The notes under the pieces: model-generated
Seen by the model: the letters and a program-made list of their open reading frames with translations, nothing else
What the model was told of the DNA's origin: nothing
The model's database searches: none
Position numbers and translations under genes: made by a program
Part shown: piece after piece, positions 20,620 to 33,852 of the stretch
Position numbering within the stretch: the first letter of the stretch is position 1
How the letters are laid out: the number at the start of each line of letters is the position of its first letter
IMG/VR virus record: IMGVR_UViG_3300043409_000928
Span: 1-64,000 of that record
DNA: 64,000 nt
Strand: one strand, 5' to 3'

Positions 20620-20623
20620 AATT

Positions 20624-21067: not shown

Positions 21068-21076
21068 ATTATCCTT

Positions 21077-21168
21077 TGGCGGAAGCGGTGAGATTCGAAC
21101 TCACGGGAGGTTTAACCCTCCGCTAGTTTTCAAGACTAGTGCCATAAACCGGACTCGGCCACACTTCC
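21077..21168 (-). tRNA. tRNA-Ser(TGA)
   Basis: CTTGAAA loop; long variable arm. Confidence 0.95.
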
Positions 21169-21173
21169 TAAAT

Positions 21174-21258
21174 TGGTGGAGTATCCTGGGATCGAACCAG
21201 GCGTGCCCGAAGGCGGCGGATTTACAGTCCACTGCATCACCATTGATGCTTCTACTCC
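21174..21258 (-). tRNA. tRNA-Tyr(GTA)
   Basis: CTGTAAA loop; long variable arm. Confidence 0.93.
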
Positions 21259-21266: not shown

Positions 21267-21295
21267 ATTTTAACACACTAACACGCAAATGTCAA
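21267..21295 (-). promoter_or_regulatory. Internal sigma70 promoter upstream of tRNA-Tyr
   Basis: TTGACA-17-TAAAAT. Confidence 0.6.
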
Positions 21296-21300
21296 TGTGT

Positions 21301-21368
21301 GTATTAAAGCATACTCGGCTCGTGGCCTTGTCCCCTAAACATTCTAGTTTTGGAATATGCTTTAATAC
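21301..21368 (-). ncRNA. Stem-closed ncRNA candidate
   Basis: GTATTAAAGCATATT...AGTATGCTTTAATAC. Confidence 0.5.
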
Positions 21369-21465
21369 GATCTAATTTTTCCTCCCACAAAAGGGATTCC
21401 ATCCTAGTCGCCGCCCATTTGCCCATGTTTTAAGTGCGGGCTAGGATCTCGTTTCCTACTACACT

Positions 21466-21503
21466 AAAAGAAAAACCCCTGGAGCCTTTCGAGTCCAGGG
21501 GTT
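21466..21503 (-). terminator. Attenuator terminator ahead of tRNA cluster 1
   Basis: AACCCCTGGA-CTCGAAAGGC-TCCAGGGGTT followed by TTTCTTTT. Confidence 0.85.
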
Positions 21504-21523
21504 AAGTAAACGGTCTGATTACT

Positions 21524-21640
21524 TTATCCTGGACATGCTCCTAGAATATGACGATATGACATAAACTTAGAAACGCTGAAGCTTAGGCTCTGTTGTGAGC
21601 ACCAACTTTGTTTCGATATGGATATGGTTTTGTTCATCAT
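21524..21640 (-). CDS. Leader (attenuator) peptide 1, 38 aa
   Basis: MMNKTISISKQSWCSQQSLSFSVSKFMSYRHILGACPG; ATG 7 nt after TATAAT (leaderless); 3' end pairs with terminator arm. Confidence 0.75.
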   Translation of the reverse strand: MMNKTISISKQSWCSQQSLSFSVSKFMSYRHILGACPG

Positions 21641-21647
21641 AGTAATC

Positions 21648-21676
21648 ATTATACACTTACTTAGCCTTTCTGTCAA
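21648..21676 (-). promoter_or_regulatory. sigma70 promoter of tRNA cluster 1 leader
   Basis: TTGACA-17-TATAAT; nested TAAGTA. Confidence 0.85.
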
Positions 21677-21702
21677 CCTCTGTTTGACTTATCGGCAAAA
21701 AT

Positions 21703-21915
21703 TTAACTTTTTAATTTTTCTTCTGCTTTCAGTTGTGAAAGCTTCATGTCGTACATCAACTTGATGCCAAACACCAACATGATGCTACATGCACCAATTC
21801 CAAGAATGGTCAGTGGTACAGTATTGAGCAACATGCCCGTACCTGTACCAATCACTATTGCCAAGATGAAAATTTTAACCACTTCATAAGCGGCTCGTTG
21901 TTTAAGTGTCAACAT
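21703..21915 (-). CDS. Two-TM membrane protein
   Basis: Hydrophobic; own promoter 21936-21963. Confidence 0.65.
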   Translation of the reverse strand: MLTLKQRAAYEVVKIFILAIVIGTGTGMLLNTVPLTILGIGACSIMLVFGIKLMYDMKLSQLKAEEKLKS

Positions 21916-21989
21916 AGAAATCCTTGTAAAGAACTATTATAGCACAAAAAATCAGTTTGTCAACCTGTGTTGTAAAAATACAACGGTAG

Positions 21990-22409
21990 CTATTTTGTTT
22001 TAGCCGCAATGTCCTTGTAGCCCGCGGTGCTGGGATGAATGCCATCAGTTTGTAGTCTTGTGATTGGCAGTACTGTATCTCCGTACTTGCCAGCAATTTC
22101 ACGCACTAGGCCTTGTATCCACTGTATGTTGACTTCGCTGGCTTTTAGGTTGCCAGCTGGCAAGATCCAGTACACTCGATCTGCTTTTACCTGCTCACGC
22201 ATCTTGACCAGTTCGTACTCGGTTTTGACATACTTGTGATCATTACTGCCCAAACTGATGATGACTGTGCTGGCTGGCTTCAGGTTCTTGGCATAGTCCT
22301 TGTTCCATTGTGATGTATTGATACCACCTTTGCCTACCAGCGCACAGTCCTGTCGGAACTGCTGTGTGCCAACTGCAATACTGTCACCTAGGATCAAACA
22401 TTCTAACAT
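21990..22409 (-). CDS. SGNH/GDSL hydrolase
   Basis: LGDS, GSND, DGIHP. Confidence 0.85.
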   Translation of the reverse strand: MLECLILGDSIAVGTQQFRQDCALVGKGGINTSQWNKDYAKNLKPASTVIISLGSNDHKYVKTEYELVKMREQVKADRVYWILPAGNLKASEVNIQWIQGLVREIAGKYGDTVLPITRLQTDGIHPSTAGYKDIAAKTK

Positions 22410-22471
22410 TTTGGTCTCCGTAAAAAAACAACCATTGCACAATTATACAATGGTTGTTTTAGGTTGTCAAC

Positions 22472-23617
22472 CTAATTTAAATTAGGCTTTTTGTACTGCA
22501 AGTTTGTCAACGATTGACCCCGTACTTTATCAAGCATGTTGGTGAATTCTAGAAACTTTTCCGGTTGTCCAATGGTGTCTAATTTTTTTAATATATTTGC
22601 CAGTTCCATAGTAATTTTAGATAAGTTGGCGCCTTGGAGAATCTGAATCGCATTATTAATTTCAACTCTGGCTTGGGTTTTCATCTCAGCAGGCAGATTT
22701 TCAAATTTTAACGGTATTGGTGTTGTTGCCACATGCGCTTTAAACTGCAAAGATGGAAACATATCTGACAACGACTGAAAGAATTTTGATGTTGCTGTGT
22801 AGTCTAATAATCCATAGGATGTTATTGTAGAATGAATTGCTACATTTTTAAATTCTTTACAAAATAATAAAGTATTTTTTTCTACAACTGGCCAGTCCGT
22901 TCCGTATCGCACGTATTCTGCTGTTTTTCCCACTGCATCAATGCTTAAATTTAAATGTAAATTTTTAAACTGTTTTAATCTGCCAATGAAGAGAGGGTTA
23001 TATACACTACAGTTGGTAAAGATAAACAACTCAATGTCTTGCTTGCCAATGGATATCAGATAGTCCAGCACATCGTAATATTTTTTAATCAGCATTGGCT
23101 CACCACCAGTTAAAAACAGTCTATCAGTGTCCTTTAATTGTTCAAGTATTTGGTTCCAGTTACTGGTAGAAGTTTCGTAGTCTGAGTCAGAACTAATTGA
23201 AAAGAATTTTGTTAACTCTGGGTTTGCTTCAACTTCTTTTTGCAACATTGAACTAGATTCGGTGTTGCACATTCTACAACTAAAATTACACTGATTACTG
23301 ATACGCAATTCCATCCATTTGGTGCCCAAGTGGTCAGTTGACGTCAAATCAAAATTTTCACATAACTTTGCATATTTTGTTGTGTAATATTTTCTAATAC
23401 TGTGCAGGCCTTTATCTTCTTTTTGCCAACAACTATTACAAGTAGATGGACGAATACCATCTAGAAACTGTTGTTTAATTTCCCGAAGATAATTAGATTT
23501 TATATAATCGTTTGGACTAACTAAAATTTTATCTCGACTGGTACAGCAAAGAGACGCCCGGTTAGATTGATAAAAGAGAGAAAGCCAAGGGGCTGGGCAA
23601 AAGGATGATGAAATCAT
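22472..23617 (-). CDS. Radical SAM protein with N-terminal SPASM/twitch-like domain
   Basis: CPAPW..CC..CNSC; CNFSCRMC; TGGEP; TAAGTA-5nt-ATG. Confidence 0.88.
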   Translation of the reverse strand: MISSSFCPAPWLSLFYQSNRASLCCTSRDKILVSPNDYIKSNYLREIKQQFLDGIRPSTCNSCWQKEDKGLHSIRKYYTTKYAKLCENFDLTSTDHLGTKWMELRISNQCNFSCRMCNTESSSMLQKEVEANPELTKFFSISSDSDYETSTSNWNQILEQLKDTDRLFLTGGEPMLIKKYYDVLDYLISIGKQDIELFIFTNCSVYNPLFIGRLKQFKNLHLNLSIDAVGKTAEYVRYGTDWPVVEKNTLLFCKEFKNVAIHSTITSYGLLDYTATSKFFQSLSDMFPSLQFKAHVATTPIPLKFENLPAEMKTQARVEINNAIQILQGANLSKITMELANILKKLDTIGQPEKFLEFTNMLDKVRGQSLTNLQYKKPNLN

Positions 23618-23647
23618 ACCAATACTTATCGTCGAAGTTACGAGCAA

Positions 23648-24286
23648 TCAGCAGTAGCCTAGGTGTTCCAATCTAGAGACCAAATTGGTCCAGGCAATTT
23701 GTCGTTTAACTTCTGCTGTGATTTGAATCCTGCTGACAGGGCAGTTGGGACTTTGTGCCCTGTGTGCAATTTCAGTTCTGTTCCAACATGCACCTGGATC
23801 TAGTACCGTAAATGCTGGCGTTGTACCCCAATCATCTATTAGAGATTTAAAACTGTATGCTGTTCGACCCACTCCATTTCGAAGTTCAGTGAACTCACGC
23901 TCGACAATTCGATCACTGTCAATCCCGTCATCCCACCAGTCCAGCGTCACTGGGCTTAGTCCTTGTATTGGAATATTAAAACGAGCCACCATGGCCGTGC
24001 CACGTTCAAATGCATCTATGTGAGCCACCTTGGGACATTGCTTAGGCTGTGAAATAAAACAAGCAAATCTTTTAAATTCTAATTTTAATTCATCAAAATG
24101 TGCCAGTACTGCATCACGCTGTGGCCAAGATTTAAACAATTCTTGTGGTACGTCAACTCGGTCAAATGCCCCTTTGATTAATTTTAATGCTGGATATAGG
24201 TTTGGTGTTAAATTCTCCATGCCCCATGCACAGTCTGAATCAGACGGATTAAATTTAGGCATTGGGATATGATAGTGTTTATGCAT
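23648..24286 (-). CDS. 2OG-Fe(II)-like DSBH protein
   Basis: AHID ... RTEIAH ... R; resembles 14751..15425. Confidence 0.6.
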   Translation of the reverse strand: MHKHYHIPMPKFNPSDSDCAWGMENLTPNLYPALKLIKGAFDRVDVPQELFKSWPQRDAVLAHFDELKLEFKRFACFISQPKQCPKVAHIDAFERGTAMVARFNIPIQGLSPVTLDWWDDGIDSDRIVEREFTELRNGVGRTAYSFKSLIDDWGTTPAFTVLDPGACWNRTEIAHRAQSPNCPVSRIQITAEVKRQIAWTNLVSRLEHLGYC

Positions 24287-24351
24287 TATATTACTTATTG
24301 GGAAAATTCTGGTGTAAAATTCAGATAATTAACTTATACAAGGAGTTTACG

Positions 24352-25254
24352 ATGAAGTTAAAAATATTGCTGTCCAGTTTATTAATCAGTGGAAGTGCCA
24401 TTGCTGGTCCAGTAGAATTTACGGTTACACATGCACCGGGTGGACCAAGTGATACCACCACACGCTTACTGGCCAAAACAGTGGGCGGTAATGAATTTGT
24501 AGTTGTTAATAGGCCAGGTGCTGGTGGTGCCATTGCTGTCAAGCAATTGTTGGACGAAAAGACCGTTTTGGTAGCAACTATGAGCCAAATCTATGTTACC
24601 AATCCCGTGCTATTTCCCAACCTAGGTTACGACCCAGACACTGATTTAGAACTAATTGGCGTTGTGGCAAGTATGCCCAGTGTGCTGGTATGCAATTCTA
24701 ATAAGAATATAAATTCCATCGGCGACTTGGCCAAAAGCCGATCACTTAACTTTGGTGTAGCAGGGTATGGAAGCAGTGAACATTTGGCAACTGAAGTGCT
24801 GTTTAAAAAATTAAAAGCCAATCACCTGGCTGTTCCTTATAGCAAGGGTGGTACTGCCGCAGTACAAGACATGTTGGGTGGAAACATTGATTGTATGTTT
24901 GCAAACTATCCGGTGGTAAGTGAGTGGGTTGGTAACAGTCGATTGAAGTTTATCATGAGCAGTCATGACTTGGGTCTTAAAGTTCCAACTTGGAAGTCTA
25001 GCTTTGCTGAGCCATTCCCATTTGAAAGCTACCTAGGATTAGTTGTTGCTCGTTCAATGAACGAAGCTGACAAGGAAGTGCTGAAGGCAAAGTTTACTCA
25101 AGCGTTTGGCAATAAAGAACTTGCAACTGCGTTGTCTAGGGCGGGCCTATTCCCTGTGCTTGCAATGGATAAGAAGTCTGTTGAAGCCGGGCTGTATAAC
25201 AATACAAAATTAAGAACGTTCATTTTACAGAACAATATTAAAATATCCAACTAA
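24352..25254 (+). CDS. Tripartite tricarboxylate transporter substrate-binding protein (Bug/TctC)
   Basis: PGGPSD..R, VVVNRPGAGG, VPYSKGG, DMLGG. Confidence 0.9.
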   Translation: MKLKILLSSLLISGSAIAGPVEFTVTHAPGGPSDTTTRLLAKTVGGNEFVVVNRPGAGGAIAVKQLLDEKTVLVATMSQIYVTNPVLFPNLGYDPDTDLELIGVVASMPSVLVCNSNKNINSIGDLAKSRSLNFGVAGYGSSEHLATEVLFKKLKANHLAVPYSKGGTAAVQDMLGGNIDCMFANYPVVSEWVGNSRLKFIMSSHDLGLKVPTWKSSFAEPFPFESYLGLVVARSMNEADKEVLKAKFTQAFGNKELATALSRAGLFPVLAMDKKSVEAGLYNNTKLRTFILQNNIKISN

Positions 25255-26460
25255 TTATCGTATCCACAAACAGTCGGACTGTAAGTTTGCAATAGGTCCT
25301 AGGCTGTAGGTATGTGAAACTACAACAAGCCCGTCAACGTCCTTGGCTGGATCTTGTTGTTTTTTAATGAAAGGTGTTAGGTTATTTTTAATATAATTAA
25401 TGCCCTCTAACCATACCTGGCCAGCTCTAGTGTCTTTGTATAGATCTAGAAACCATCCATCAAATTCACTGCTCCAATCATACACAGCTTTCTTTGCCTG
25501 GAACCAGTTGGGATTCCATGTGGTGTATAACAGTCCACGAAGTAGTGGATCATGATGAAGTCTATACACTTCAGTGGTAACATATGAAGTGTCCCAAATT
25601 TTTTGATTTTCAGGAAATGCTTCTAACCATCGTTTAATTACGTGCCCTTGCTTGATTATAAGCTCTGGCATGTCTGGAGTCCAGTAAAAGAACTCAACAG
25701 TACTATTTGGATACTCTTTTAGGTGTTCTGCTACAGTAATCATATTGGTAGTACGATCGCTGAATGTCATCAACAGTTCTCCGCGGTGGAGTTGCGTTCT
25801 TGGCTTTTCAATACCAACTACAATAGCAATCTTATGATCCTTGTCAAACTTTTTTCGAATCTCAGAAAAGTGTAGAAAGTTAAAGCGGGTCATACCTGCT
25901 GGGTTTAAACCTTCACGCTTGTTTAGTACCCAACTGGCATCACCTGCGGTTTCGAGTTCTGCAAATAGTGCATCACTACAGTCTGTAATTGTAATTTTTG
26001 TTTTAGGCATCCAGGTTGAAATTTCTTTTAACCTGGGAATAGTATTCAAATTGTGTTCTGACTCGGGTGCATTGTATGCATCTGTATTGGAAGGATCAAT
26101 TATCATTGCAGATGAACTGGCCTTGGTCATTGTGTTGGTAATAATCTCATCAATGTGCAGTCCTTGCCGATAAAAGCTCATTAAGATGTTATGGCTATCG
26201 GCACCGCCTGAATAACTTAAAATGAGGTAATCGTATTGCTCGCGCAACTGTCGAGCACGTTGGTCATACAACTGGTCTAATGACTGCTCGGGCTCTTTTT
26301 TCCAATCGTACTTGTTGAACTCGTCATTGTTAAAAACCCAAGTAACTGGCTTCTTTACTTCCATTGCATATATACATGCACGAATTTTTGAATCAAACTC
26401 TAGGTCACCTACAATATAGTATCCAAGTTTTTTATTAATATATGGGTTGTGTATTCTCAT
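25255..26460 (-). CDS. N-type ATP pyrophosphatase (PP-loop) protein
   Basis: LSYSGGADS. Confidence 0.7.
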   Translation of the reverse strand: MRIHNPYINKKLGYYIVGDLEFDSKIRACIYAMEVKKPVTWVFNNDEFNKYDWKKEPEQSLDQLYDQRARQLREQYDYLILSYSGGADSHNILMSFYRQGLHIDEIITNTMTKASSSAMIIDPSNTDAYNAPESEHNLNTIPRLKEISTWMPKTKITITDCSDALFAELETAGDASWVLNKREGLNPAGMTRFNFLHFSEIRKKFDKDHKIAIVVGIEKPRTQLHRGELLMTFSDRTTNMITVAEHLKEYPNSTVEFFYWTPDMPELIIKQGHVIKRWLEAFPENQKIWDTSYVTTEVYRLHHDPLLRGLLYTTWNPNWFQAKKAVYDWSSEFDGWFLDLYKDTRAGQVWLEGINYIKNNLTPFIKKQQDPAKDVDGLVVVSHTYSLGPIANLQSDCLWIR

Positions 26461-27383
26461 AGTTGCGTGAACCGTTTTACTTTGTCAGAGGACCAATTGC
26501 TTAGATGTGTTATTAGTTCATCACGTGGAACAAACACACATTTATTTTTATAGTTATGACGAAGTCGAGTGTCAGTTGGATTCATTATAAAGTCTACTTT
26601 CTCAGAGCTAACATACTTTGGAAAAATTTCTAATTCCTGACCCCAATACATTCCGTATATGATTGGTTTTACGTAGTATTCCCAACTGAAGATCAATGGA
26701 GGTGGCTCTCCTGTTTCTTTGTCTACTAGTCCGTTTCCTTTAATGTATTCCAATGCATTGATATAGCCGGTAACTACTGGATCACTTAGGTATGCCAAAG
26801 CAAAGTTATTAAATGGCGCCCTACGGTCAATACAAACAATCTTTCCCGACCGCACAACCTGCTTTAATGCTCGTTGGCTCGCAACTTCAATTGCAGTCCA
26901 TGACTCCATACAGTATGCTTTACCTTGCCTGAAGACAAAATCAAAACTTTCAATTCCTTGGCAAAAATCTCGATCTTTGGGTAATTGAGCCAGGAACTTT
27001 TTCATCATGTGATGTTCGGCTGGAATGCCCGTGGATATTGCATTTGCTTCTATTTCTTCACGAATTGCAAATGGGTCTATTTCAACAATTGTACACTCAA
27101 ATCCGTATTTCTTTTCAAGTATCTTAATGTTATTGTATTCAAAATCATTGTAACCTGGATGATACATGAATGCACACTCGTATGGCAAACCCAGCGTGTG
27201 AAATGTGTGCAGTAGCACTTGGCTGTCTAGGCCACTGGTAAGACTTATTAAAACTTTGCTTTGTGCTTCATTAGCAAGTCTAGTACATGACTTTTCCATT
27301 TCCTGCCGGACTGTGCCAATTGGTTCCGAGCAGGCTGTATATTCTACATAAAATTTGTCGTTGTCATCTAGACCATATATCAT
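26457..27383 (-). CDS. N-type ATP pyrophosphatase (PP-loop) protein
   Basis: SLTSGLDSQ; TAAGTA-5nt-ATG. Confidence 0.65.
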   Translation of the reverse strand: MIYGLDDNDKFYVEYTACSEPIGTVRQEMEKSCTRLANEAQSKVLISLTSGLDSQVLLHTFHTLGLPYECAFMYHPGYNDFEYNNIKILEKKYGFECTIVEIDPFAIREEIEANAISTGIPAEHHMMKKFLAQLPKDRDFCQGIESFDFVFRQGKAYCMESWTAIEVASQRALKQVVRSGKIVCIDRRAPFNNFALAYLSDPVVTGYINALEYIKGNGLVDKETGEPPPLIFSWEYYVKPIIYGMYWGQELEIFPKYVSSEKVDFIMNPTDTRLRHNYKNKCVFVPRDELITHLSNWSSDKVKRFTQL

Positions 27384-27391
27384 GCACTTAC

Positions 27392-27571
27392 TTACCAACT
27401 GCCGTTGTCAACAACTATCCTGACTGATAGCACGAGTATCTGTACTACAACTTCTCGACGACCGGGGCACGGCCATTCAGCCTTGGTTGGATCAATGCAG
27501 TAAGAAATACGCCAATGAAATGGATTACAAATTAATGTAACCCATATGCCACTGTATCTAAACCAATCCAT
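27392..27571 (-). CDS. Hypothetical protein
   Basis: NPFHWR motif; coupled. Confidence 0.55.
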   Translation of the reverse strand: MDWFRYSGIWVTLICNPFHWRISYCIDPTKAEWPCPGRREVVVQILVLSVRIVVDNGSW

Positions 27572-28089
27572 TAAATATTCCCTTCGTGCTTGGGCATTAT
27601 AAAACCCCACTCATTTGTGGTGCCATGCACATCGTAGGACTTTTCTTCACTGTCATAAGTCCAACCCAGCTCTCGCATCATTTTGTGCTTGACCAATAAG
27701 TTAGGAATACGAAAACGTTCGCAATCTGCAAAGCCCATCATGACACCAACTTCTACTACTGCGCCGCTACGGCAAATGCCTGCATGGCAGTGAACCACAA
27801 CATTCATACGATTTTCCCAAGCATGTTTCAACAAGCGAACCAGCTCAACAGCCTGTGCGTCTGTGATAGCAAACTCACTCATGTCAATAGTCTTACCATC
27901 ACCGGTATTGGTCATGCCATCTTCTTCAATATCCAAAAATGTAAATTGGTGCACTTCTTTGAACTCATGACGGGGTGTAGGAAATGCCATGTCGTGATCC
28001 GAAATTTGAATCAACATGCTGTTGGCACCGCAATCGTGGTGGCGCCCAGCGGCTACATTTTCTAAAGGTATGTTTTCAATCCAGGGCAT
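27571..28089 (-). CDS. Cys-based (tyrosine/dual-specificity-like) phosphatase
   Basis: VHCHAGICRS (CX5R). Confidence 0.85.
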   Translation of the reverse strand: MPWIENIPLENVAAGRHHDCGANSMLIQISDHDMAFPTPRHEFKEVHQFTFLDIEEDGMTNTGDGKTIDMSEFAITDAQAVELVRLLKHAWENRMNVVVHCHAGICRSGAVVEVGVMMGFADCERFRIPNLLVKHKMMRELGWTYDSEEKSYDVHGTTNEWGFIMPKHEGNI

Positions 28090-28099
28090 GTTCTTCTCC

Positions 28100-29581
28100 T
28101 TATAACGACATTAATAGTTGTATGTACTCGGTCAGCCGCTTGTCTTTTGCTGTGACCAGTTCAAAACGAGTCCATTTATTTTTATTTTCTTTTAAAAATC
28201 TATCTTCACTGAATCCAAGTTGAAGTAATTGCAGTATTGACCATGATCCGTGATAGGCATTAGTGGTCAGATTTATCTCCGTTATTGTTTCTTTAAGAAA
28301 TTTGCTAGTTTCTTTAAAACTCCAATAATCGTTATGCCAATTTCCACGATCTTGTTTGATAGGAAAAAAGTAACCGTATTTTTCTTTTTCTTTTTCAAAC
28401 TCACTTGGATTTCGAATCAATGATGTTGTATCGTCGGTAGCCATCATACCCAGGCAATGCCAGGAAATATTGTACAGGTTATTATCATTGAACCAGTGTG
28501 CTGTGCTCTTGATACTTTCTCTAGTGTCACCGGGTAGTCCAATGATAAAACTTAGTGTCTGGTGTATCTTGCCTTTCCAGATATTATGATAAAGTTCTGG
28601 TATATACTCTCGGGCTCGTTTCCCACTCCAACCTTTGCCTATACTGGCCGATGCTTGTTCTCCTAGTGTTTCAATACCATGAAACGTGCTTATCATTCCA
28701 GTTTCTTGCAGTATGTGAGGAACGTCGTCAAATCGCTCCAGTAGGTCGGCTCGTATATAAGATGTAAACTTAATTTTGAATGGTAAACTAGTAATCATGT
28801 CATGCCAAGCTTTCATCTTGTATTCTGTATCGTTGAAAGTGTCGCATATAACGTAGTACAGTTGTGTACCAAAGTTTTCATAGTTACTCAACATCTCTTC
28901 TTTGACCAAGTCAAAGCTTCTAAGGTAGTCTAGCTTTCCTCGACCTAATAATAGGTGATTACAAAATTTACACTTGAAGATACATCCTCGACTTATTTCA
29001 ACTGGTAGTGCTTCGCCTGGTAATATTGCATCTTGTTTGACAAATCTAAAATTGTCAGTTTCAATGTTAAAGTTTTCATGTATTGGTACTGAGTAAACTT
29101 TATATGTTTGACTTGTAATTCTTGTGTTCTCTAATGTATAAGCAGGCTCATCACCGTGTCCTGAGATATGCTTCAGGACATCTACAAATATATCTTCACC
29201 ATATTTTGAAACAACTGAATGAATATTTTGTATTGTTGAGAGTGTCAATCCTGAAAGACCGTAGCCACCAAATATTAATTTTAGATTTGGATATTTTGCT
29301 GTAATGTGATTCAAAGCCAGTGTAAAACTTGCTGTAAATTGCATCTGACCAACGGTAGGTGTAAGGAATGTTGTACTGACACCCAGTACTAATGTGTCAT
29401 TGGAAACAAATTTTTCCAGTGCTGCCACAAGTTGATCATAAGAAAAATAAACCACATGATCAATAACTTGTGCTGTGTATCCGGCTTGCCTTACTGAGTG
29501 AGCAATTTTATATGCGCCCAGAGTACGATACATTGTAATGTTACTAACGTCTGGTCCAGTGTTAAGAATAACAACATCCAT
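28100..29581 (-). CDS. B12-binding radical SAM protein (class B methyltransferase-like)
   Basis: N-terminal B12 domain (GVSTTF, IFGG, GE); SRGCIFKCKFC; GIET; IIGLPGDT. Confidence 0.85.
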   Translation of the reverse strand: MDVVILNTGPDVSNITMYRTLGAYKIAHSVRQAGYTAQVIDHVVYFSYDQLVAALEKFVSNDTLVLGVSTTFLTPTVGQMQFTASFTLALNHITAKYPNLKLIFGGYGLSGLTLSTIQNIHSVVSKYGEDIFVDVLKHISGHGDEPAYTLENTRITSQTYKVYSVPIHENFNIETDNFRFVKQDAILPGEALPVEISRGCIFKCKFCNHLLLGRGKLDYLRSFDLVKEEMLSNYENFGTQLYYVICDTFNDTEYKMKAWHDMITSLPFKIKFTSYIRADLLERFDDVPHILQETGMISTFHGIETLGEQASASIGKGWSGKRAREYIPELYHNIWKGKIHQTLSFIIGLPGDTRESIKSTAHWFNDNNLYNISWHCLGMMATDDTTSLIRNPSEFEKEKEKYGYFFPIKQDRGNWHNDYWSFKETSKFLKETITEINLTTNAYHGSWSILQLLQLGFSEDRFLKENKNKWTRFELVTAKDKRLTEYIQLLMSL

Positions 29582-29627
29582 TTACTTTTATTCCTTGAAA
29601 ATTTAGTGGCTGTGTTACTTATTGTAA

Positions 29628-29655
29628 TGGCTCCAGTGGCTGGGATCGAACTCAG
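29628..29655 (-). pseudogene. tRNA 3'-end remnant
   Basis: CTGAGTTCGATCCCAGCCACTGGAGCCA: T-arm, acceptor strand and CCA only. Confidence 0.65.
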
Positions 29656-29668
29656 GCTGAGAAGTATA

Positions 29669-29744
29669 TGGCTGGCAAACCTGGGCTCGAACCAGGGACA
29701 TTTCGGTTAACAGCCGAACGCTCTACCAACTGAGCTATATGCCA
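29669..29744 (-). tRNA. tRNA-Asn(GTT)
   Basis: CTGTTAA loop; G73. Confidence 0.95.
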
Positions 29745-29760
29745 ATAATAAATTTAATTC

Positions 29761-29890
29761 ACTTTATAGGTGCTCTCTGTGACGCTTGAATTCACGGTAG
29801 CCCTGCTCTTCCTGGCACCTCTTGACCTGCTCGAGACTAGTCAAGTGCAGTGTTGTTCCAGTGTAGCTACTCAGAAAGCACGTATAAAGT
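29761..29890 (-). ncRNA. Stem-closed ncRNA candidate
   Basis: ACTTTATACGTGCTTTCTG...CAGAGAGCACCTATAAAGT. Confidence 0.5.
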
Positions 29891-30088
29891 GTCCGGCTAC
29901 TCACACCACATGAGCCCCGGACTGAGCGGTTACTCTGTCCATAACATTTTTCTTATGGGATGGCGTTATACCACACCCCAGGCAGTTTCCAGTATCCCAT
30001 ATAGTGGGACTGTGAGGTCAGGTCCTAGTGTACCCCCTGTTCTCTCGTTTCAGGGACGCTGTTTTATAACGCAAAACAGTAAACCGGG
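29890..30088 (-). ncRNA. Structured ncRNA candidate, copy A
   Basis: Shares ordered motifs with 32545-32745. Confidence 0.6.
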
Positions 30089-30322
30089 TTATTTAATTTT
30101 ACGCATATAGTTTTTTACATTTATTTCGCCTGAATTAAATTCAAGCAATGCAGTTACCGGTGCGTTAAATTGTTCTGTCTTTCCATCATTCCTATGCTGG
30201 CTTGCTAGTTCTCTTGCTCGAGCAGATGCCATAAGAATCAGATTAAACTTGTTTCCGCCTGCATTTTCAATGCATACCTCCACATCAATTTCTGTGCCGC
30301 GACTTAGTGATTTAGAATGCAT
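30089..30322 (-). CDS. rpoZ: RNA polymerase omega subunit homolog
   Basis: NKFNLILMASARAREL...PVTALLEF..GEI. Confidence 0.8.
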   Translation of the reverse strand: MHSKSLSRGTEIDVEVCIENAGGNKFNLILMASARARELASQHRNDGKTEQFNAPVTALLEFNSGEINVKNYMRKIK

Positions 30323-30348
30323 TGTTTGCCTTTGTTGTTAACTACTCA

Positions 30349-30422
30349 TGGAGCGGGATAAGAGAATCGAACTCTTGACCGAAGATTGGAAATCTGCTGT
30401 TTTACCATTAAACTAATCCCGC
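30349..30422 (-). tRNA. tRNA-Gly(TCC)
   Basis: TTTCCAA loop; U73. Confidence 0.95.
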
Positions 30423-30955
30423 CAATGCACACCACCTACCTGTGTCAAACGTAATGCTATGCTGACTCTGGTATCAGTTACGCCTGATACGTTATGTAGA
30501 ATATTCGAGTGAAGCATCACCCATTTTCTTAACGGCACTATAGTCGAATAACATTTTTCGAGGTCGTCAAACACAGTTGTATTTGCTATGCTAGCTTTTC
30601 TAATTAAAGGAAATCCCTTTTCTATGAACCAATTTGTCTGAACATCTATGCCCCCTTGATCCAGGATATAAAAAATAGTAGTTTCACCTGCCGCGTCTGT
30701 GTGAGGAGCTTTAGTTCCGTATGGGGGGAGAATTTCTTGAATAGAACTGTCACTTAACTGGTAACCATCCAGTTGAGGCACAATATTTGCTGTTATCCAA
30801 TCTTTCATTTTTGTTGACTGCCTGTATTTCATAAAACACTGTTGTCTAGCATAGTATTGAGAAGACAGTGAAATACAGGAATATGCGTCTTGTTCTAGAT
30901 CATATGGTAAGGGTGGATAATCTAATTCTTTATAAAAATCTTCAGGACTAAACAT
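30413..30955 (-). CDS. 2OG-Fe(II)-like DSBH protein
   Basis: PHTD ... ILHNV ... R; stop codon lies inside tRNA-Gly. Confidence 0.6.
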   Translation of the reverse strand: MFSPEDFYKELDYPPLPYDLEQDAYSCISLSSQYYARQQCFMKYRQSTKMKDWITANIVPQLDGYQLSDSSIQEILPPYGTKAPHTDAAGETTIFYILDQGGIDVQTNWFIEKGFPLIRKASIANTTVFDDLEKCYSTIVPLRKWVMLHSNILHNVSGVTDTRVSIALRLTQVGGVHWRD

Positions 30956-30977
30956 TACTTTTTCTCCGTTTTAAACT

Positions 30978-31054
30978 TGGTCGGAGTACTAGGATTCGAA
31001 CCTAGGACCTCATCGTCCCAAACGATGCGAACTACCGGGCTGTTCTACACTCCG
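30978..31054 (-). tRNA. tRNA-Pro(TGG)
   Basis: TTTGGGA loop. Confidence 0.95.
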
Positions 31055-31061
31055 ACATAAC

Positions 31062-31136
31062 TGGTTGCAGGGGATGGATTCGAACCACCGATCTTCAGCT
31101 TATGAGACTGACGAGTTGCCACTTCTCTACCCCGCG
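31062..31136 (-). tRNA. tRNA-Met(CAT), initiator-like
   Basis: C1:A72 mismatch; CTCATAA. Confidence 0.9.
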
Positions 31137-31155
31137 ATAACTTACTAACTTTAAC

Positions 31156-31231
31156 TGGTGCCGCTTGTCGGATTCGAACTGACCACCTGCCGCTTACAAG
31201 GCGGCTGCTCTACCAAATGAGCTAAAGCGGC
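31156..31231 (-). tRNA. tRNA-Thr(TGT)
   Basis: CTTGTAA loop. Confidence 0.95.
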
Positions 31232-31260
31232 GAAACTTTTATAACCTTACTTATGTGTGC

Positions 31261-31335
31261 TGGTGCGCGGTGAGAGTTTCGAACTCCCGACCCTCTCGGT
31301 GTAAACGAGACGCTCTACCACTGAGCTAACCGCGC
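31261..31335 (-). tRNA. tRNA-Val(TAC)
   Basis: TTTACAC loop. Confidence 0.95.
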
Positions 31336-31345
31336 CGTTGATTTA

Positions 31346-31786
31346 TTAATCACCTAGATATTCGTAATTGGTTGACTCAGTGTTTTCTCTAAAAACAATA
31401 GCACCATTTTTTGTATGAAACCTTTTGGCCATCTCTGTTTTAGGACTCAGTGTAACAAATCTTTTAATATGTGTCTTGTGCTGTTGTATATGCTTCACTG
31501 CATCAAATATCAACTGTTTACCAGCGCCTGGCTTGTAACTCCAGATTGTATAAAATACTGCTGTGTCTGGTTCCTCTGAACTTTCAAACAATTGATCTTC
31601 GCTGGTGGGAATTCCAATTTGGTAACTCACACAAGTAATGGCTCGTGCTATATCATTTTCATCTCTTAAAACAAAAATGTCTTTGTTATCGCCCATGCGC
31701 TCTACAGTAGGAATATGCGGGCGTACTGGATCGTCCTTGAGATATTCTGCAAGTTTTTCACTTAGATTTTGAAGAAGGTATAACAT
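31346..31786 (-). CDS. Conserved phage protein, GNAT-like fold
   Basis: DDPVRP, AVFYTIWS..GAG, FVTLSP. Confidence 0.7.
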   Translation of the reverse strand: MLYLLQNLSEKLAEYLKDDPVRPHIPTVERMGDNKDIFVLRDENDIARAITCVSYQIGIPTSEDQLFESSEEPDTAVFYTIWSYKPGAGKQLIFDAVKHIQQHKTHIKRFVTLSPKTEMAKRFHTKNGAIVFRENTESTNYEYLGD

Positions 31787-31961
31787 CAGAGTTACTTAGT
31801 CGTTTATAATTGTTATTGCTATCATCTTTGATAACTGCTTCGGCTTGGTTCTCACCTTCAGCCTTTTTCTTTTTTCCAAACGCCAATTCCCAATTGCTTG
31901 TAAATGTATCTTCATCTACACTCTTTGGTCTTGGCGCGGATCCTTTGCCAGCTTCTTGCAT
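31758..31961 (-). CDS. Small conserved phage protein
   Basis: GKGSAPRP...NWELAFG. Confidence 0.6.
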   Translation of the reverse strand: MQEAGKGSAPRPKSVDEDTFTSNWELAFGKKKKAEGENQAEAVIKDDSNNNYKRLSNSDVIPSSKSK

Positions 31962-31982
31962 ACTAACTTTCCTTTAAAATAG

Positions 31983-32058
31983 TGGTGGAGGTGACAAGGA
32001 TCGAACTTGCGACATCCAGCTTGCAAAGCTGGCGCTCTCCCAACTGAGCTACACCCCC
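31983..32058 (-). tRNA. tRNA-Ala(TGC)
   Basis: G3-U70; TTTGCAA. Confidence 0.95.
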
Positions 32059-32076
32059 AAAAATTTTATGATTTGC

Positions 32077-32164
32077 ACCATAGAAAAACACACTCAAGTC
32101 CGCGGCACGGAAGGCACTATACCCGCGATGGCTTTTGACCAGGCCTAGTGTGTTTATCTATAGT
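32077..32164 (-). ncRNA. Stem-closed ncRNA candidate
   Basis: ACTATAGATAAACACACT...AGTGTGTTTTTCTATGGT, near-identical stem to 19656-19788. Confidence 0.55.
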
Positions 32165-32165
32165 T

Positions 32166-32273
32166 AGCATATTGAAACACACTATACAACAGGTTTAGGT
32201 CTGCTTCTGTATCCTGCTACGGCCGAGTATGAAGTTATCTCTGGACCTATGCCGTAATGTGTTTTAATATGCT
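32166..32273 (-). ncRNA. Stem-closed ncRNA candidate
   Basis: AGCATATTAAAACACATT...AGTGTGTTTCAATATGCT. Confidence 0.55.
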
Positions 32274-32460
32274 CTGCGAACCCCGGTGGTAATTGTAGTG
32301 CATCCTCTCCCGGGTTACCCCAGTACGACCTCACCTTCCACCCACTTCCCGGCAGGTTCCGTTAACGCATTGCCAGCGGCCTTTTGGTTCGAAGACTACC
32401 ACCCGTGGTTGTCACACCACTTCTCATCCTGCGGGTCACAGTATCCGACGACACTCGGAA
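32272..32460 (-). ncRNA. GC-rich structured ncRNA candidate
   Basis: CTGTGACCC/GGGTTCGCAG and GGTGGTAGT/ATTACCACC long-range stems. Confidence 0.5.
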
Positions 32461-32464
32461 CGTC

Positions 32465-32540
32465 TGGTTGCGGGGCTTGGATTTGAACCAAGGATGGCAA
32501 TGGCTTATGAGACCACGCTGGTGACCAGGCCCTCCCCGCG
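32465..32540 (-). tRNA. tRNA-Met(CAT), initiator-like, aberrant D arm
   Basis: C1:A72; CTCATAA; CCA. Confidence 0.8.
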
Positions 32541-32544
32541 ATTA

Positions 32545-32745
32545 GGATTAAGCTACTGGTTTCCACACCAGCCCTTAAATTGAGCAGTTACTCTGTCCAT
32601 CTCATTTATTCAAAGTCTGTGTGCAGTTGAGATTCTGCCTATCAGAGTCTGCGAGGGTAGTTTCCAGCCTCACGCTTACGGTTTTCTGCCACCGGATCTC
32701 TATCGCTAATCAAACGCTATTTTAACGAAAATAGTAACGGGATAG
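32545..32745 (-). ncRNA. Structured ncRNA candidate, copy B
   Basis: Shares ordered motifs with 29890-30088. Confidence 0.6.
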
Positions 32746-32870
32746 ATGGGCTCAGTTACAAACTGATTTAATGCTCCCTGCTCGGCGTTTTGACTTGCAT
32801 CCTTTTCAGGCTGACCTTCAAGGTCCATTTAATGCGTCCTGCTTTGCGTTCTGGAACCACCCTAAACTCT

Positions 32871-32899
32871 ATTATAGCACCAATCAACGTGAGTGTCAA
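32871..32899 (-). promoter_or_regulatory. sigma70 promoter (internal)
   Basis: TTGACA-17-TATAAT. Confidence 0.8.
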
Positions 32900-32913
32900 T
32901 TGGTGCCAAATCT

Positions 32914-32988
32914 TGGCGACTCGTGGGAGAATCGAACTCCCGTAAGCGGATAGACAATCCGCAGTAATAACCTCTATACGAACGAGCC
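32914..32988 (-). tRNA. tRNA-Asp(GTC)
   Basis: TTGTCTA loop; G73. Confidence 0.92.
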
Positions 32989-32995
32989 TAATTTC

Positions 32996-33080
32996 TGGTG
33001 CGACTGGCCGGAATCGAACCGGCACGCCCTTCAGCGAGAGATTTTAAGTCTCTTGTGTCTACCGATTTCACCACAGTCGC
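32996..33080 (-). tRNA. tRNA-Leu(TAA)
   Basis: CTTAAAA loop; long variable arm. Confidence 0.95.
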
Positions 33081-33083
33081 AAT

Positions 33084-33300
33084 ACCATATGTAAAATTAC
33101 AAAGGAACTCCACTTACCTTGCAGGACCGTCTCCTGCTACTTCTGCTTCGTCATTACGCTCTAGTAAATCCTACCGTGCCATTTGGTGATGTTGCCATCC
33201 CTCAGCTTTCATATACACTACATTGAGCCAGCCCGTCAGCTGGTTATACTCAATACAGGTACCTAGCAGTACTAGTAACCTTTATAACTTTACATATGGT
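33084..33300 (-). ncRNA. Stem-closed ncRNA candidate (~215 nt)
   Basis: ACCATATGTAAAGTTATAAAGG...CCTTTGTAATTTTACATATGGT. Confidence 0.55.
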
Positions 33301-33371
33301 ACTCGATAGGAGAATCGAACTCCTCTTTCCGGCGTGAAAGGCCAGCGTCCTAACCGATAGACGAATCGAGC
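33297..33371 (-). tRNA. tRNA-Glu(TTC)
   Basis: CTTTCAC loop. Confidence 0.95.
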
Positions 33372-33386
33372 ACAAATGCCACCAAA

Positions 33387-33399
33387 TTTTTAAAGAACA
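33387..33399 (-). promoter_or_regulatory. boxA-like antitermination element
   Basis: TGTTCTTTAAAAA vs rrn boxA TGCTCTTTAACA. Confidence 0.6.
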
Positions 33400-33430
33400 A
33401 TCACTTCAACTTTCGCTGTAGTGTTTGGTT

Positions 33431-33566
33431 ATTATATACGGACAATGCCGTAATGTCAACCGTTTTCTAACTTTCTTTTGTTGTATTTCTACAACAACTT
33501 TCAAACTGTTTCTACTGTATTGCTACAGTATGCCACTAGTATATGCTATCTACTGATTCCTGTCAA
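33431..33566 (-). promoter_or_regulatory. Tandem sigma70 promoters, each with an upstream palindrome
   Basis: TTGACA-17-TATAAT (33431-33459); TTGACA-17-TATACT (33538-33566); TGTTGTATTTCTACAACA at 33479 and 33586. Confidence 0.8.
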
Positions 33567-33607
33567 CAACTATCTGCCTTTATTTTGTTGTATTTCTACA
33601 ACAAACT

Positions 33608-33681
33608 TGGAGCGGGATAGGAGAATCGAACTCCTGACTAAACCTTGGCAAGGTTTCGTTTGACCATTAAACTAATCCCGC
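33608..33681 (-). tRNA. tRNA-Gly(GCC)
   Basis: TTGCCAA loop; U73. Confidence 0.95.
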
Positions 33682-33697
33682 ATAACCTTTCCACAAT

Positions 33698-33728
33698 AAA
33701 AAAACCCTGGAGTTTTTATTTCCAGGGC
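33698..33728 (-). terminator. Attenuator terminator ahead of tRNA cluster 2
   Basis: CCCTGGA-AATAAAAAC-TCCAGGG-TTTTTTT. Confidence 0.85.
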
Positions 33729-33751
33729 CTGTAATCTCACTATGCGTAGAG

Positions 33752-33817
33752 TTACGGCCTCGGAGTATCCTCTGTGGCTGGTCCTGTATTACCTGGTAAC
33801 AATTTTGCATTTAACAT
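33752..33817 (-). CDS. Leader (attenuator) peptide 2, 21 aa
   Basis: MLNAKLLPGNTGPATEDTPRP; ATG 6 nt after TATAAT (leaderless); 3' end pairs with terminator arm. Confidence 0.75.
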   Translation of the reverse strand: MLNAKLLPGNTGPATEDTPRP

Positions 33818-33823
33818 AGTACC

Positions 33824-33852
33824 ATTATATATCCTTTTAAACAAGAAGTCAA
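33824..33852 (-). promoter_or_regulatory. sigma70 promoter of tRNA cluster 2 leader
   Basis: TTGACT-17-TATAAT. Confidence 0.85.

Follow-up and report, generated by a model that had tools for sequence, protein, structure and literature searches.

Both tRNA gene clusters of this uncultivated giant phage begin with a very short open reading frame (ORF) followed by an intrinsic terminator, which raises the question of whether tRNA synthesis is controlled by translation of the leader. We addressed this in a 64,000-nucleotide stretch of IMG/VR record IMGVR_UViG_3300043409_000928 (positions 1 to 64,000), referred to in the following as the window, and in related viral loci, designated L followed by a number. 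No relative of this phage was found at the DNA level in the GenBank phage collection. A previous sequence-only reading had proposed that the two leaders are codon-matched attenuators that sense depletion of the tRNAs encoded by their own cluster.

Architecture of the two tRNA cluster heads

The layout described by the sequence-only reading is present at both clusters. All features are on the minus strand, and each cluster is headed by a consensus sigma70 promoter, an ATG 6–7 nt after the -10 element, a short ORF and an intrinsic terminator 22–24 nt after the stop codon (Table 1). An ATG 6–7 nt after the -10 also occurs at three other strong promoters in the window, so this feature alone is weak evidence. 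The tRNA-Tyr gene counted in the sequence-only reading (21177–21258) was missed by ARAGORN, but was found by the Rfam tRNA model at 33.6 bits. Two details of that reading needed adjustment. The complementarity between the last codons and the 5' arm of the terminator was claimed for both leaders, but while the ORF end in leader 1 (GUCCAGG) pairs fully with the arm, in leader 2 a hairpin containing the stop codon overlaps it by only 2 nt. In addition, the assignment of a CAT tRNA as an Ile2 (ATA) decoder is presumptive. The internal promoters mentioned in that reading were confirmed at the positions listed in Table 1 and at 17565.

Table 1. Features at the heads of the two tRNA clusters, all on the minus strand. 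L097 carries a homolog of leader 2; L064 is a diverged unit.
Feature	Position	Description	Observations
Leader-1 promoter	21648..21676	TTGACA-17-TATAAT (12/12)	Promoter, spacer and first codons nearly invariant in 9 relatives
Leader ORF 1	21524..21640	38 codons (MMNKTISISKQSWCSQQSLSFSVSKFMSYRHILGACPG) plus TAA (21526–21524); ATG at 21640, 7 nt after the -10; mRNA predicted to be leaderless	ORF kept in all homologs; P 0.037 in shuffles for an ORF ending 18–34 nt before the stem
Antiterminator 5' strand	21528..21534	GTCCAGG (last codons TGT CCA GGA), complementary to the terminator 5' arm	Without the 3' arm, minimum-energy fold pairs it with CCUGGAC (duplex -12.8 kcal/mol); equivalent in 36/38 units
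Spacer	21502..21523	22 nt with inner hairpin AGUAA..UUACU, a possible pause hairpin	Same hairpin in L064
Intrinsic terminator 1	21466..21501	CCCCTGGA / TCCAGGGG stem (-16.1 kcal/mol) plus TTTTTCTTTT	Stem conserved, loop variable in relatives
Structured RNA	21270..21460	Conserved, between leader 1 and the first tRNA	16 of 35 pairs show compensatory changes; motif in at least 120 viral contigs; no Rfam match
Internal promoter	21267..21295	TTGACA-17-TAAAAT, directly before tRNA-Tyr	Not conserved in the relatives inspected
tRNA cluster 1	16821..21258	18 tRNAs: Tyr, Ser-TGA, Trp, CAT, Arg-TCG, Cys, CAT, Lys, His, Phe, Gln, Ile-GAT, Trp, Arg-CCT, Leu-CAA, Ser-GCT, Leu-TAG, Arg-TCT	
Leader-2 promoter	33824..33852	TTGACT-17-TATAAT (11/12)	Homolog at L097:3358-3386 is TTGACA-17-TATAAT
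Leader ORF 2	33752..33817	21 codons (MLNAKLLPGNTGPATEDTPRP) plus TAA (33754–33752); ATG at 33817, 6 nt after the -10	L097 homolog MLNANLLPGTNTPAVEGTPQA, same length and frame
Stop-codon hairpin	33726..33759	GGCCGTAACTC / GAGATTACAGGCC; 3' arm shares 2 nt with the base of the terminator	Covarying equivalent in L097, GGCTTGATC / GATCAAGCC
Intrinsic terminator 2	33698..33727	CCCTGGA / TCCAGGG plus T7; tRNA-Gly(GCC) starts 16 nt later	Compensatory pair CCTTGGA / TCCAAGG in L097; stem and loop of the family type CCCTGGAACTAAACACTCCAGGG
tRNA cluster 2	29669..33681	12 tRNAs: Gly-GCC, Glu, Leu-TAA, Asp, CAT, Ala, Val, Thr, CAT, Pro, Gly-TCC, Asn	
Internal promoters	33431..33566	Two consensus promoters (33566–33538 and 33459–33431) between tRNA-Gly(GCC) and tRNA-Glu; a third at 32899–32871	One conserved at L097:3645-3673

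Conservation and specificity of the leader units

To determine whether the layout is specific to tRNA arrays, we scanned the window plus 96 loci, about 770 kb of related phage DNA in total, for a promoter with an ATG at +4–9, a short ORF and a terminator. The scan hit only the leader-1 family, leader 2 and two diverged units, L064 and L011, all of which sit at the heads of tRNA arrays. When the ORF requirement was removed, only these units had an ATG at the start and a stop codon 22–30 nt before the stem. A motif scan based on the associated RNA then found at least 117 further viral loci, of which 46 carried a strict leader unit (38 distinct peptides), while 53 of the other 64 carried the family-type terminator.

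The geometry of the units is conserved. The stop codon lies 17–32 nt, mostly 22–32 nt, before the terminator stem, with a mode of 26–27 nt, and shuffles gave P values of 0.037, 0.105, 0.035 and 0.021 for four unalignable units. In 36 of the 38 distinct units, the ORF-end window pairs with the 5' arm of the terminator (5.6 nt paired, compared to 0.9 nt in shuffles), using different stem sequences. Three independent indels in the leader-1 family are all 3 nt long and thus in frame, and Ser is kept through codon box switches (AGC/TCT, TCA/AGC), although codon positions 1, 2 and 3 vary almost equally (18/19/25). In 28 of the 38 units, a small ORF with an SD but no promoter starts within 11–22 nt of the T-run and would need readthrough for its expression.

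Equilibrium folding, however, kept the leader-1-type terminator more than 80% formed wherever the ribosome was placed, and predicted a clear switch only for L064, L011 and leader 2 of L097. Kinetic control must therefore be assumed.

Codon content of the leaders and their arrays

We next asked whether the leaders match the tRNAs encoded downstream. The counts given in the sequence-only reading hold: 31 of 38 codons in leader 1 fall in the 12-amino-acid set of cluster 1, and 19 of 21 in leader 2 fall in the 10-amino-acid set of cluster 2. For leader 1, P was 0.008 against composition-preserving shuffles, 0.010 against all stop-free windows and 0.037 against small ORFs of the window; for leader 2, the same tests gave 2e-4, 0.004 and 0.003. 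At the codon level with wobble rules, the matches were 30/38 for leader 1 (P 0.0045), 18/21 for leader 2 (P 1.9e-4) and 19/21 for leader 2 of L097 (P<3e-5). The partition of amino acids between the two leaders follows that between the clusters, with a Fisher P of 8.9e-6 in this phage and 9e-8 in the L097 phage, although these two values are not independent.

Some covariation was seen among relatives, for Tyr, Asp, Glu and Pro. The L092 leader has lost its only Tyr codon and its array lacks Tyr, Asp and Glu tRNAs, whereas leaders with Asp (plus Glu and an extra Pro in L072 and L084) head arrays that hold those tRNAs. The L164 leader and its array share exactly the same 18 amino-acid types. Permutations within subfamilies gave P values of 0.0005 for concordance, 0.006 for recall and 0.034 for precision, but these do not fully remove shared ancestry, and the effect sizes are small (recall 0.97 for a leader's own array and 0.92 for others).

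The match fails for Thr, Val and Asn, and for Glu in L076. The L011 leader is not enriched for its known, incomplete array (28/50, about the share that its set holds of the 61 sense codons), and arrays with only 6 amino-acid types (L123, L139 and L223) have leaders with 18–19 types. Codon matching thus holds statistically in this phage and its close relatives, but it is not a family rule. The more general property is a high amino-acid diversity of the leader (mean z +1.5), with 9 leaders holding all 20 amino acids in 40–53 codons.

Relationship to previously described systems

The units most closely resemble the enterobacterial leader-peptide attenuators of amino-acid biosynthesis operons (trpL, hisL, leuL, thrL, ilvL and pheL), which also have a short ORF, an intrinsic terminator before the regulated genes and an alternative pairing that involves the 3' end of the ORF and the 5' arm of the terminator. 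The logic also matches that proposed here: in these systems, a ribosome at the stop codon leads to termination, and a lagging ribosome to readthrough. In the phage units, the genes presumed to be regulated are tRNAs, plus a small ORF and a structured RNA, rather than enzymes; the leader has no Shine–Dalgarno sequence and is predicted to start at the 5' end of the transcript; there is no run of one regulatory codon, but a mixed leader with 16–20 amino-acid types; and the element is carried by phages. No Rfam leader family matched.

T-box riboswitches also couple the state of the tRNA pool to readthrough of an intrinsic terminator, but bind an uncharged tRNA directly, need no translation and control synthetase and amino-acid genes in Gram-positive bacteria. 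No T-box match was found by Rfam search, and an ORF is maintained in the phage units. In the pyrBI and pyrE attenuators, a leader ORF likewise ends close to a terminator and the outcome depends on how closely the ribosome follows the polymerase. There, however, a closely following ribosome prevents formation of the terminator hairpin and the signal is UTP-dependent pausing, whereas here the ribosome is predicted to remove an antiterminator, the opposite polarity. Phages T4 and T5 have tRNA clusters with host-type promoters and interspersed small ORFs, and phage tRNAs, including those that offset anticodon nucleases or host tRNA loss, are proposed to keep decoding going during infection. To our knowledge, and according to full-text literature searches, no leader-peptide attenuator has been described for any of them. 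What is new in the proposed attenuator is that it would gate tRNA genes, is predicted to be leaderless and uses a mixed-codon leader.

Alternative explanations

One possibility is that the unit is a translation-coupled attenuator that reports general translation status, such as ribosome availability, overall elongation rate, or the stringent or host-shutoff state during infection, rather than the particular tRNAs of its array. The diversity of the leaders whatever the array holds, the absence of codon runs and the already high recall between leaders and other arrays are consistent with this, and the structural evidence serves this reading equally well. On the other hand, the split in composition between the two paralogous leaders in this phage and in the L097 phage, the covariation of Tyr, Asp, Glu and Pro, and the within-subfamily permutations speak against it, and we consider it a tentative alternative. 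Equally tentative is that the unit is a self-contained small gene, consisting of a promoter, an ORF of 21–53 codons or a small RNA, and an ordinary terminator, whose product acts on its own, with the tRNAs transcribed from their own promoters and the compositional match inherited or coincidental. The terminators are strong and predicted to dominate at equilibrium, consensus promoters lie just downstream, each subfamily keeps peptide motifs, one Trp is near-universal (39/40), and attenuator-derived RNAs and leader peptides that act in trans are known in Sinorhizobium (PMC6614838, PMC7298713). However, the conserved spacing and pairing across unalignable sequences, the promoterless small ORF after the T-run and the restriction of the unit to the heads of tRNA arrays in the DNA scanned argue against it. 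Furthermore, variable positions change freely with little third-position excess, and no Pfam or PHROG family matched.

It is unlikely that the leader encodes an arrest peptide of the TnaC, SecM or ErmCL type, in which the nascent chain, perhaps with a ligand, stalls the ribosome and so sets termination, independently of tRNA supply. The conserved Trp and the subfamily motifs SAYWSLF, LW.ICE, AWSHA.GR.NSIPG and SWCSKQS could be tunnel-interacting segments, but the distance from the Trp to the stop codon varies from 11 to 27 codons between subfamilies, the C-terminal residues differ completely, and nothing points to a ligand. That the layout arose by chance from ordinary promoters and terminators with incidental ORFs is very unlikely, given its recurrence in dozens of diverged phages with conserved geometry and covarying pairing, even though an ATG at the start site is common at the promoters of this phage and the leader-1 match alone is only P 0.01–0.04.

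A model for the leader units

Taken together, these results partly support the interpretation offered in the sequence-only reading: the attenuator gains strong comparative support, whereas matching of each leader to its own array is not general. We consider each unit most likely to be a ribosome-mediated transcription attenuator at the 5' edge of a phage tRNA cluster, although with no more than moderate confidence. The parts, their conservation, the alternative pairing, the maintained ORF and the compositional match are shown by sequence and comparison, whereas translation of the ORF, activity of the terminator, the direction of the switch and the signal, be it specific tRNAs or translation in general, are inferred. 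The proposal that tRNA loss switches the array on is also limited by the consensus promoters 100–250 nt downstream of both terminators, so that readthrough could at most add to transcription of the arrays; in cluster 2, only tRNA-Gly(GCC) depends on it.

In this model, host RNA polymerase starts at or within 1–3 nt of the ATG. A ribosome that keeps pace and reaches the stop codon would cover the 3' end of the ORF, allowing the terminator to fold and transcription to end. A ribosome that lags, because of slow decoding or a missing or uncharged tRNA, would leave the antiterminator intact, and the polymerase would read on into the tRNA genes, in most relatives first into a small ORF of 50–60 residues and the conserved structured RNA. 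Since the leaders carry unusually many amino-acid types and in this phage are partitioned like the two clusters, the sensed quantity is probably decoding capacity for the codons that the phage's own tRNAs serve. This would give a demand-driven tRNA supply, and may let the phage make tRNAs on demand.

Organization of the two leader units

All 30 tRNA genes of the window were found on the minus strand, in two clusters. One further gene, tRNA-Tyr, was missed by ARAGORN but was found by the Rfam tRNA model at 33.6 bits. The sequence-only reading had described both clusters as headed by a promoter, an ATG just after the −10 element, a short ORF and an intrinsic terminator, and when the minus strand was read this observation held for both units, with the layout exactly as described. 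The coordinates of these and other features are collected in the table below. The predicted terminators consist of GC-rich stems of 7–8 bp followed by T-runs. The CCCTGGA/TCCAGGG stem shared by the two leaders occurs nowhere else in the window, which rules out the idea that it is a common repeat of this genome.

The source contig, IMGVR_UViG_3300043409_000928 (285 kb), has no relative at the DNA level among GenBank phages, and DNA searches of the leader regions against the same collection returned nothing beyond tRNA matches. It carries a permuted (two-piece) tmRNA of the betaproteobacterial type, scoring 132 bits and with the tag ANDSQFALAA. Four related loci (L005, L006, L017 and L022; loci retrieved from other contigs are designated L followed by a number) carry one too, which hints at a betaproteobacterial host. 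Two radical-SAM proteins and a GDSL-type lipase are encoded between the two tRNA clusters, with a ribonucleotide reductase and a subtilase further along.

Three more strong promoters in the window have an ATG exactly 6 nt after the −10. Leaderless mini-ORFs may thus be a general habit of this phage, or ATG may be a favored start-site sequence.

Features of the window and of related loci
Feature	Location	Strand	Description
Leader 1 promoter	21676-21648	−	TTGACA-17-TATAAT; ATG 7 nt after the −10; ORF of 38 codons
Leader 1 stop codon	21526-21524	−	TAA, followed by a 22-nt spacer
Leader 1 terminator (predicted)	21501-21466	−	CCCCTGGA..TCCAGGGG plus T-run
Structured RNA	21270-21460	−	Between the leader 1 terminator and the first tRNA
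Consensus promoter past the leader 1 terminator, before tRNA-Tyr	21295-21267	−	ATG 6 nt after the −10; ORF of 2 codons (ATG GAG TAG)
tRNA-Tyr	21177-21258	−	Found by the Rfam tRNA model
Leader 2 promoter	33852-33824	−	TTGACT-17-TATAAT; ATG 6 nt after the −10; ORF of 21 codons
Leader 2 stop codon	33754-33752	−	
Leader 2 terminator (predicted)	33727-33698	−	CCCTGGA..TCCAGGG plus T7; tRNA-Gly(GCC) starts 16 nt later
Consensus promoters past the leader 2 terminator	33566 and 33459		The latter conserved in L097
Further strong promoter	37144-37116	−	ATG 6 nt after the −10; ORF of 11 codons
Further strong promoter	22470-22442	−	ATG 6 nt after the −10; ORF of 10 codons, running over the SD of the GDSL-lipase gene
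GDSL-type lipase	21990-22442		
Radical-SAM protein, 391 residues	22472-23647	−	
Radical-SAM protein, 493 residues	28100-29581	−	
Subtilase	37225-39294		
Permuted tmRNA	43031-43421	−	
Ribonucleotide reductase	49070-51403		
Small ORF after the leader terminator	L076:8474-8632	−	
Small ORF after the leader terminator	L081:323-484	−	
Small ORF after the leader terminator	L072:346-498	+	
Small ORF after the leader terminator	L071:9582-9740	+	
Promoter and 14-codon ORF	L097:3139-3232		ATG 6 nt after the −10; immediately before tRNA-Ile(TAT)
tRNA-Ile(TAT)	L097:3233 onward		About 92 nt, with an unusually long insert
tRNA-Ile(TAT)	L071:12875-12966		About 92 nt, with an unusually long insert

Codon content of the leaders

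To determine whether the codon match between each leader and its own cluster was more than chance, we compared the observed counts with several null models. When only amino acids exclusive to one cluster were counted, the ratios were 26:7 for leader 1 and 2:15 for leader 2 (Fisher P = 8.9e-6). The match is real in this genome, although the leader 1 figure alone would not be remarkable. The matching codons are distributed along both leaders, with no runs of a regulatory codon.

Match between leader codons and the tRNA clusters
Test	Leader 1	Leader 2
Codons in the amino-acid set of its own cluster	31/38	19/21
P, composition-preserving shuffles	0.008	2e-4
P, all stop-free windows	0.010	0.004
P, small ORFs of the window	0.037	0.003
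Codons decodable by own cluster (wobble rules)	30/38	18/21
P, codon level	0.0045	1.9e-4
Codons decodable by the other cluster	11/38	4/21

Homologs of the two leaders

Pattern scans and look-ups of neighboring genes gave nine further distinct leader 1 sequences, with full downstream arrays known for several of them. The pattern hits L079, L080 and L089 were chance matches inside coding genes and were rejected. The promoter, the first codons, the last ten codons, the spacer and the terminator stem are nearly invariant, whereas the middle of the ORF varies. The ORF is always intact: three independent indels are each exactly 3 nt, and two Ser positions are kept through six-fold box switches. Codon positions 1, 2 and 3 vary 18/19/25, so the peptide as such is weakly constrained while the reading frame is kept. 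In L076, the same A-to-G change occurs in both TCCAGG copies, at the ORF end and in the terminator 3′ arm, each giving a G·U pair with the shared CCUGGA, which could reflect selection to keep the two pairings balanced.

The content of the leaders covaries with that of the arrays in several places. The L092-type phage has moved tRNA-Tyr to its other cluster and has no Asp or Glu tRNA in this array; its leader has lost the single Tyr codon and has no Asp or Glu codon. The clade whose arrays contain tRNA-Asp has two Asp codons in the leader, and L072 and L084, whose arrays start with Glu and Asp and contain Pro, have Glu, Asp and an extra Pro codon. There are also counter-examples. Thr is in the window and L092 leaders without a Thr tRNA in the array, and is in the L076 array without a codon in the leader. 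Glu in the L076 array and Val in the L072 array are both missing from the corresponding leader, while Asn, Gly and Ala are in all of the leaders and in none of these arrays.

A homolog of leader 2 was found in the L097 phage, with the same promoter, ATG offset and length, and encoding MLNANLLPGTNTPAVEGTPQA. Of its codons, 19/21 are decodable by its own cluster (P < 3e-5), and seven of the eight differing residues stay within the cluster 2 set (P = 0.057). The stop-codon hairpin and the terminator stem both carry compensatory changes. This homolog was reached through a neighboring gene; the first leader 2 pattern and a second 17-mer found only the window itself and one true homolog among chance hits, and a scan with a cluster 2 ORF returned only the window's own contig. 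The gene upstream of leader 2 has an 88%-identical relative in L002, but there it is followed by another gene and not by the leader. Two exact-protein look-ups gave no match. L097 also has a promoter followed by a 14-codon ORF, MMKHFSIAGSISIR, that contains three ATA codons and ends in a hairpin without a T-run, and the tRNA-Ile(TAT) just behind it is the ATA decoder. The tRNA-Ile(TAT) genes of L097 and L071 may contain an intron or a long variable region.

Distribution of the architecture

We then scanned the window and 96 loci on both strands for a promoter, an ATG 4–9 nt after the −10, an ORF of 12–70 codons and a perfect-stem terminator. The scan found only the leader 1 family, leader 2 and two unalignable units, L064 (39 codons) and L011 (50 codons), both of which sit at the head of a tRNA array. 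When the ORF requirement was dropped, 19 of 680 promoter-like sites had a nearby terminator, and among these only the leader units had an ATG at the start and a stop 22–30 nt before the stem. The geometry is non-random. The unit is not universal, however, since more distant relatives (L027, L066, L017, and the Leu-TAA head in L011) have arrays with no such leader.

Between leader 1 and the first tRNA lies a conserved structured RNA with four helices, compensatory changes in 16 of 35 pairs, and conserved single strands CACUAUAAACAU and AAAUGGGCGG. It is seen in the window, in our alignment A2 and in loci L115–L231, and has no match in Rfam. A scan for its motif found at least 120 viral contigs in IMG/VR, many of them 100–360 kb, whereas 185,579 species genomes gave only 9 hits, mostly in contigs from metagenome-assembled genomes, one of them of Herbaspirillum (L232). 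Of the 117 new loci, 46 carry a strict leader unit 230–475 nt upstream of the motif, giving 38 distinct peptides, and 53 of the other 64 loci carry the family-type terminator at the same place. The ATG offsets are 6–7 nt (26 units) or 9–10 nt (11 units), the ORFs are 24–53 codons, and the stop-to-stem distances are 17–32 nt, with a mode of 26–27. The module has no relative among GenBank phages.

In 28 of the 38 units, an SD-led ORF of 50–60 residues starts 11–22 nt after the T-run with no promoter of its own, and it can only be expressed by readthrough. These ORFs encode a family of helical small proteins (..LT.EQ...L.Q.K..RA..) with no significant match in Pfam or PHROG. The window and L077 have lost this small ORF.

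Alternative RNA structure

When the nascent leader 1 transcript was folded without the 3′ arm of the terminator, GUCCAGG, from the last codons, paired over 7 bp with CCUGGAC, the 5′ arm of the terminator, enclosing a small hairpin. L064 and L011 do the same with quite different sequences, GGGGGUUUGG/CCAAACCCUC and CAGGGUC/GACCCU. Across the 38 distinct units, at least 4 nt of the 5′ arm pair with the window around the stop codon in 36 units, with a mean of 5.6 nt, against 0.9 nt after shuffling the upstream sequence. This is the strongest single argument for an attenuator. In leader 2, the stop-codon hairpin shares only the two basal pairs of the terminator, which would still disable the terminator, but the case is weaker.

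Equilibrium modeling with a masked ribosome footprint gave a clear switch for L064, L011 and the L097 leader 2 homolog, with a terminator probability of 0.01–0.4 without a ribosome or with one stalled upstream, and about 1 with a ribosome near the stop. There was no switch for the leader 1 type or for leader 2 of the window, where the terminator stayed above 0.8. In the trp attenuator, the terminator can be the more stable structure and the choice is kinetic; the equilibrium result therefore weakens the model without refuting it.

Leader and array content across the family

The sequence-only reading had proposed comparing leader codons with downstream anticodons in related phages, and this was done for 40 leader/array pairs. 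Recall (array amino acids found in the leader) was 0.97 for the leader's own array and 0.92 for other arrays, and precision (leader codons served by the array) was 0.60 and 0.56, respectively. Global permutation gave P < 5e-5, and permutation only within subfamilies gave P = 0.006 for recall, 0.034 for precision and 0.0005 for concordance, although shared ancestry is not fully removed by these tests and many arrays are cut by locus ends. One leader of 35 codons (L164) holds exactly the 18 amino-acid types of its array and lacks Asp and Glu, as the array does. In contrast, phages with arrays of 6 types still have leaders with 18–19 types, and the leader of L011 is not enriched for its known, incomplete array. 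The codon match is thus not general across the family.

The property that does hold across the whole family is high amino-acid diversity, with a mean z of +1.5, and nine leaders hold all 20 amino acids in 40–53 codons. For single leaders, this diversity was not individually significant (P = 0.13, 0.05 and 0.03), and it becomes significant only across the family.

Proposed mechanism and alternatives

The best-supported reading of these units is a ribosome-mediated (leader-peptide) transcription attenuator. In this model, the mRNA is leaderless, a ribosome at the stop codon removes the antiterminator and the terminator then forms, whereas a lagging ribosome gives readthrough. The regulated output would be the DNA immediately downstream, which in most relatives is a small ORF, then the structured RNA, then the tRNAs, and in the window is the structured RNA plus cluster 1, and tRNA-Gly(GCC) plus cluster 2. 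The presence and conservation of the parts, the intact reading frame, the alternative pairing and the codon match in this genome rest on sequence and comparison, while translation of the leaderless ORF, termination at the hairpins, and the dependence of readthrough on leader translation and on the supply of charged tRNA are inferred. The main difficulty is the set of consensus promoters just past both terminators, which would limit the dynamic range for most of the array. The interpretation offered in the sequence-only reading, that each leader senses the tRNAs its own operon can resupply, is supported only in part: that the signal is the supply of the very tRNAs encoded downstream is plausible for this lineage but remains an inference.

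A general translation-rate sensor fits the wider family about as well. A stand-alone small gene whose RNA or peptide acts in trans cannot be excluded. Subfamily motifs do exist in the peptides, in the leader 1 family variability is spread nearly evenly over the codon positions, and searches of Pfam and PHROG gave no hit to the leader peptides. Such a gene does not, however, explain the conserved pairing, the spacing or the promoterless small ORF. The leaders do not fit arrest peptides of the TnaC, SecM or ErmCL type, which call for a conserved motif at a fixed distance from the stall or stop site: the only near-universal residue, Trp (39 of 40 leaders), lies 11–27 codons from the stop depending on the subfamily, and the C-termini are unrelated. 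A covariance-model search of window positions 16000–44000 against Rfam (E ≤ 0.1) gave only tRNAs, the tmRNA and two chance plastid-UTR matches lying on tRNA genes, with no match to the His_leader, Trp_leader, Leu_leader, Thr_leader or other leader families, nor to the T-box riboswitch model.

Significance

Leader-peptide attenuation as a class of mechanism is established, but is not known outside amino-acid biosynthesis operons and a few other protein-coding operons, and it is not known to have been described for tRNA genes. A search of the full-text literature found no description of leader-peptide control of tRNA genes or of such units in phages. What is new here is the target, the predicted leaderless start, the mixed-codon leader, and the phage setting and its breadth. 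The family is large, with at least 117 loci, and varied, which gives a natural mutational series for experiments, and since the promoters are consensus sigma70, the units should be directly testable in E. coli. They could also serve as compact sensors of translation capacity in synthetic biology.

A further possibility, which we regard as tentative, is that a widespread family of uncultivated, mostly freshwater giant phages carries a decoding-capacity sensor, in which ribosome progress along a leaderless ORF rich in amino-acid types sets readthrough of a terminator into the phage's own tRNA genes and an associated small protein and structured RNA. This would give the virus a homeostatic, demand-driven tRNA supply, for example when host tRNAs decay or are cut by anticodon nucleases, and in phages with split arrays, paralogous leaders would have specialized to the codons that each array serves.

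If these units work as their anatomy suggests, they would be the first case of tRNA genes regulated by the act of decoding itself, and would show that phage tRNA arrays can be regulated rather than simply expressed throughout infection. That bears on why large phages carry so many tRNAs, and on how they respond to host defenses that target tRNA.
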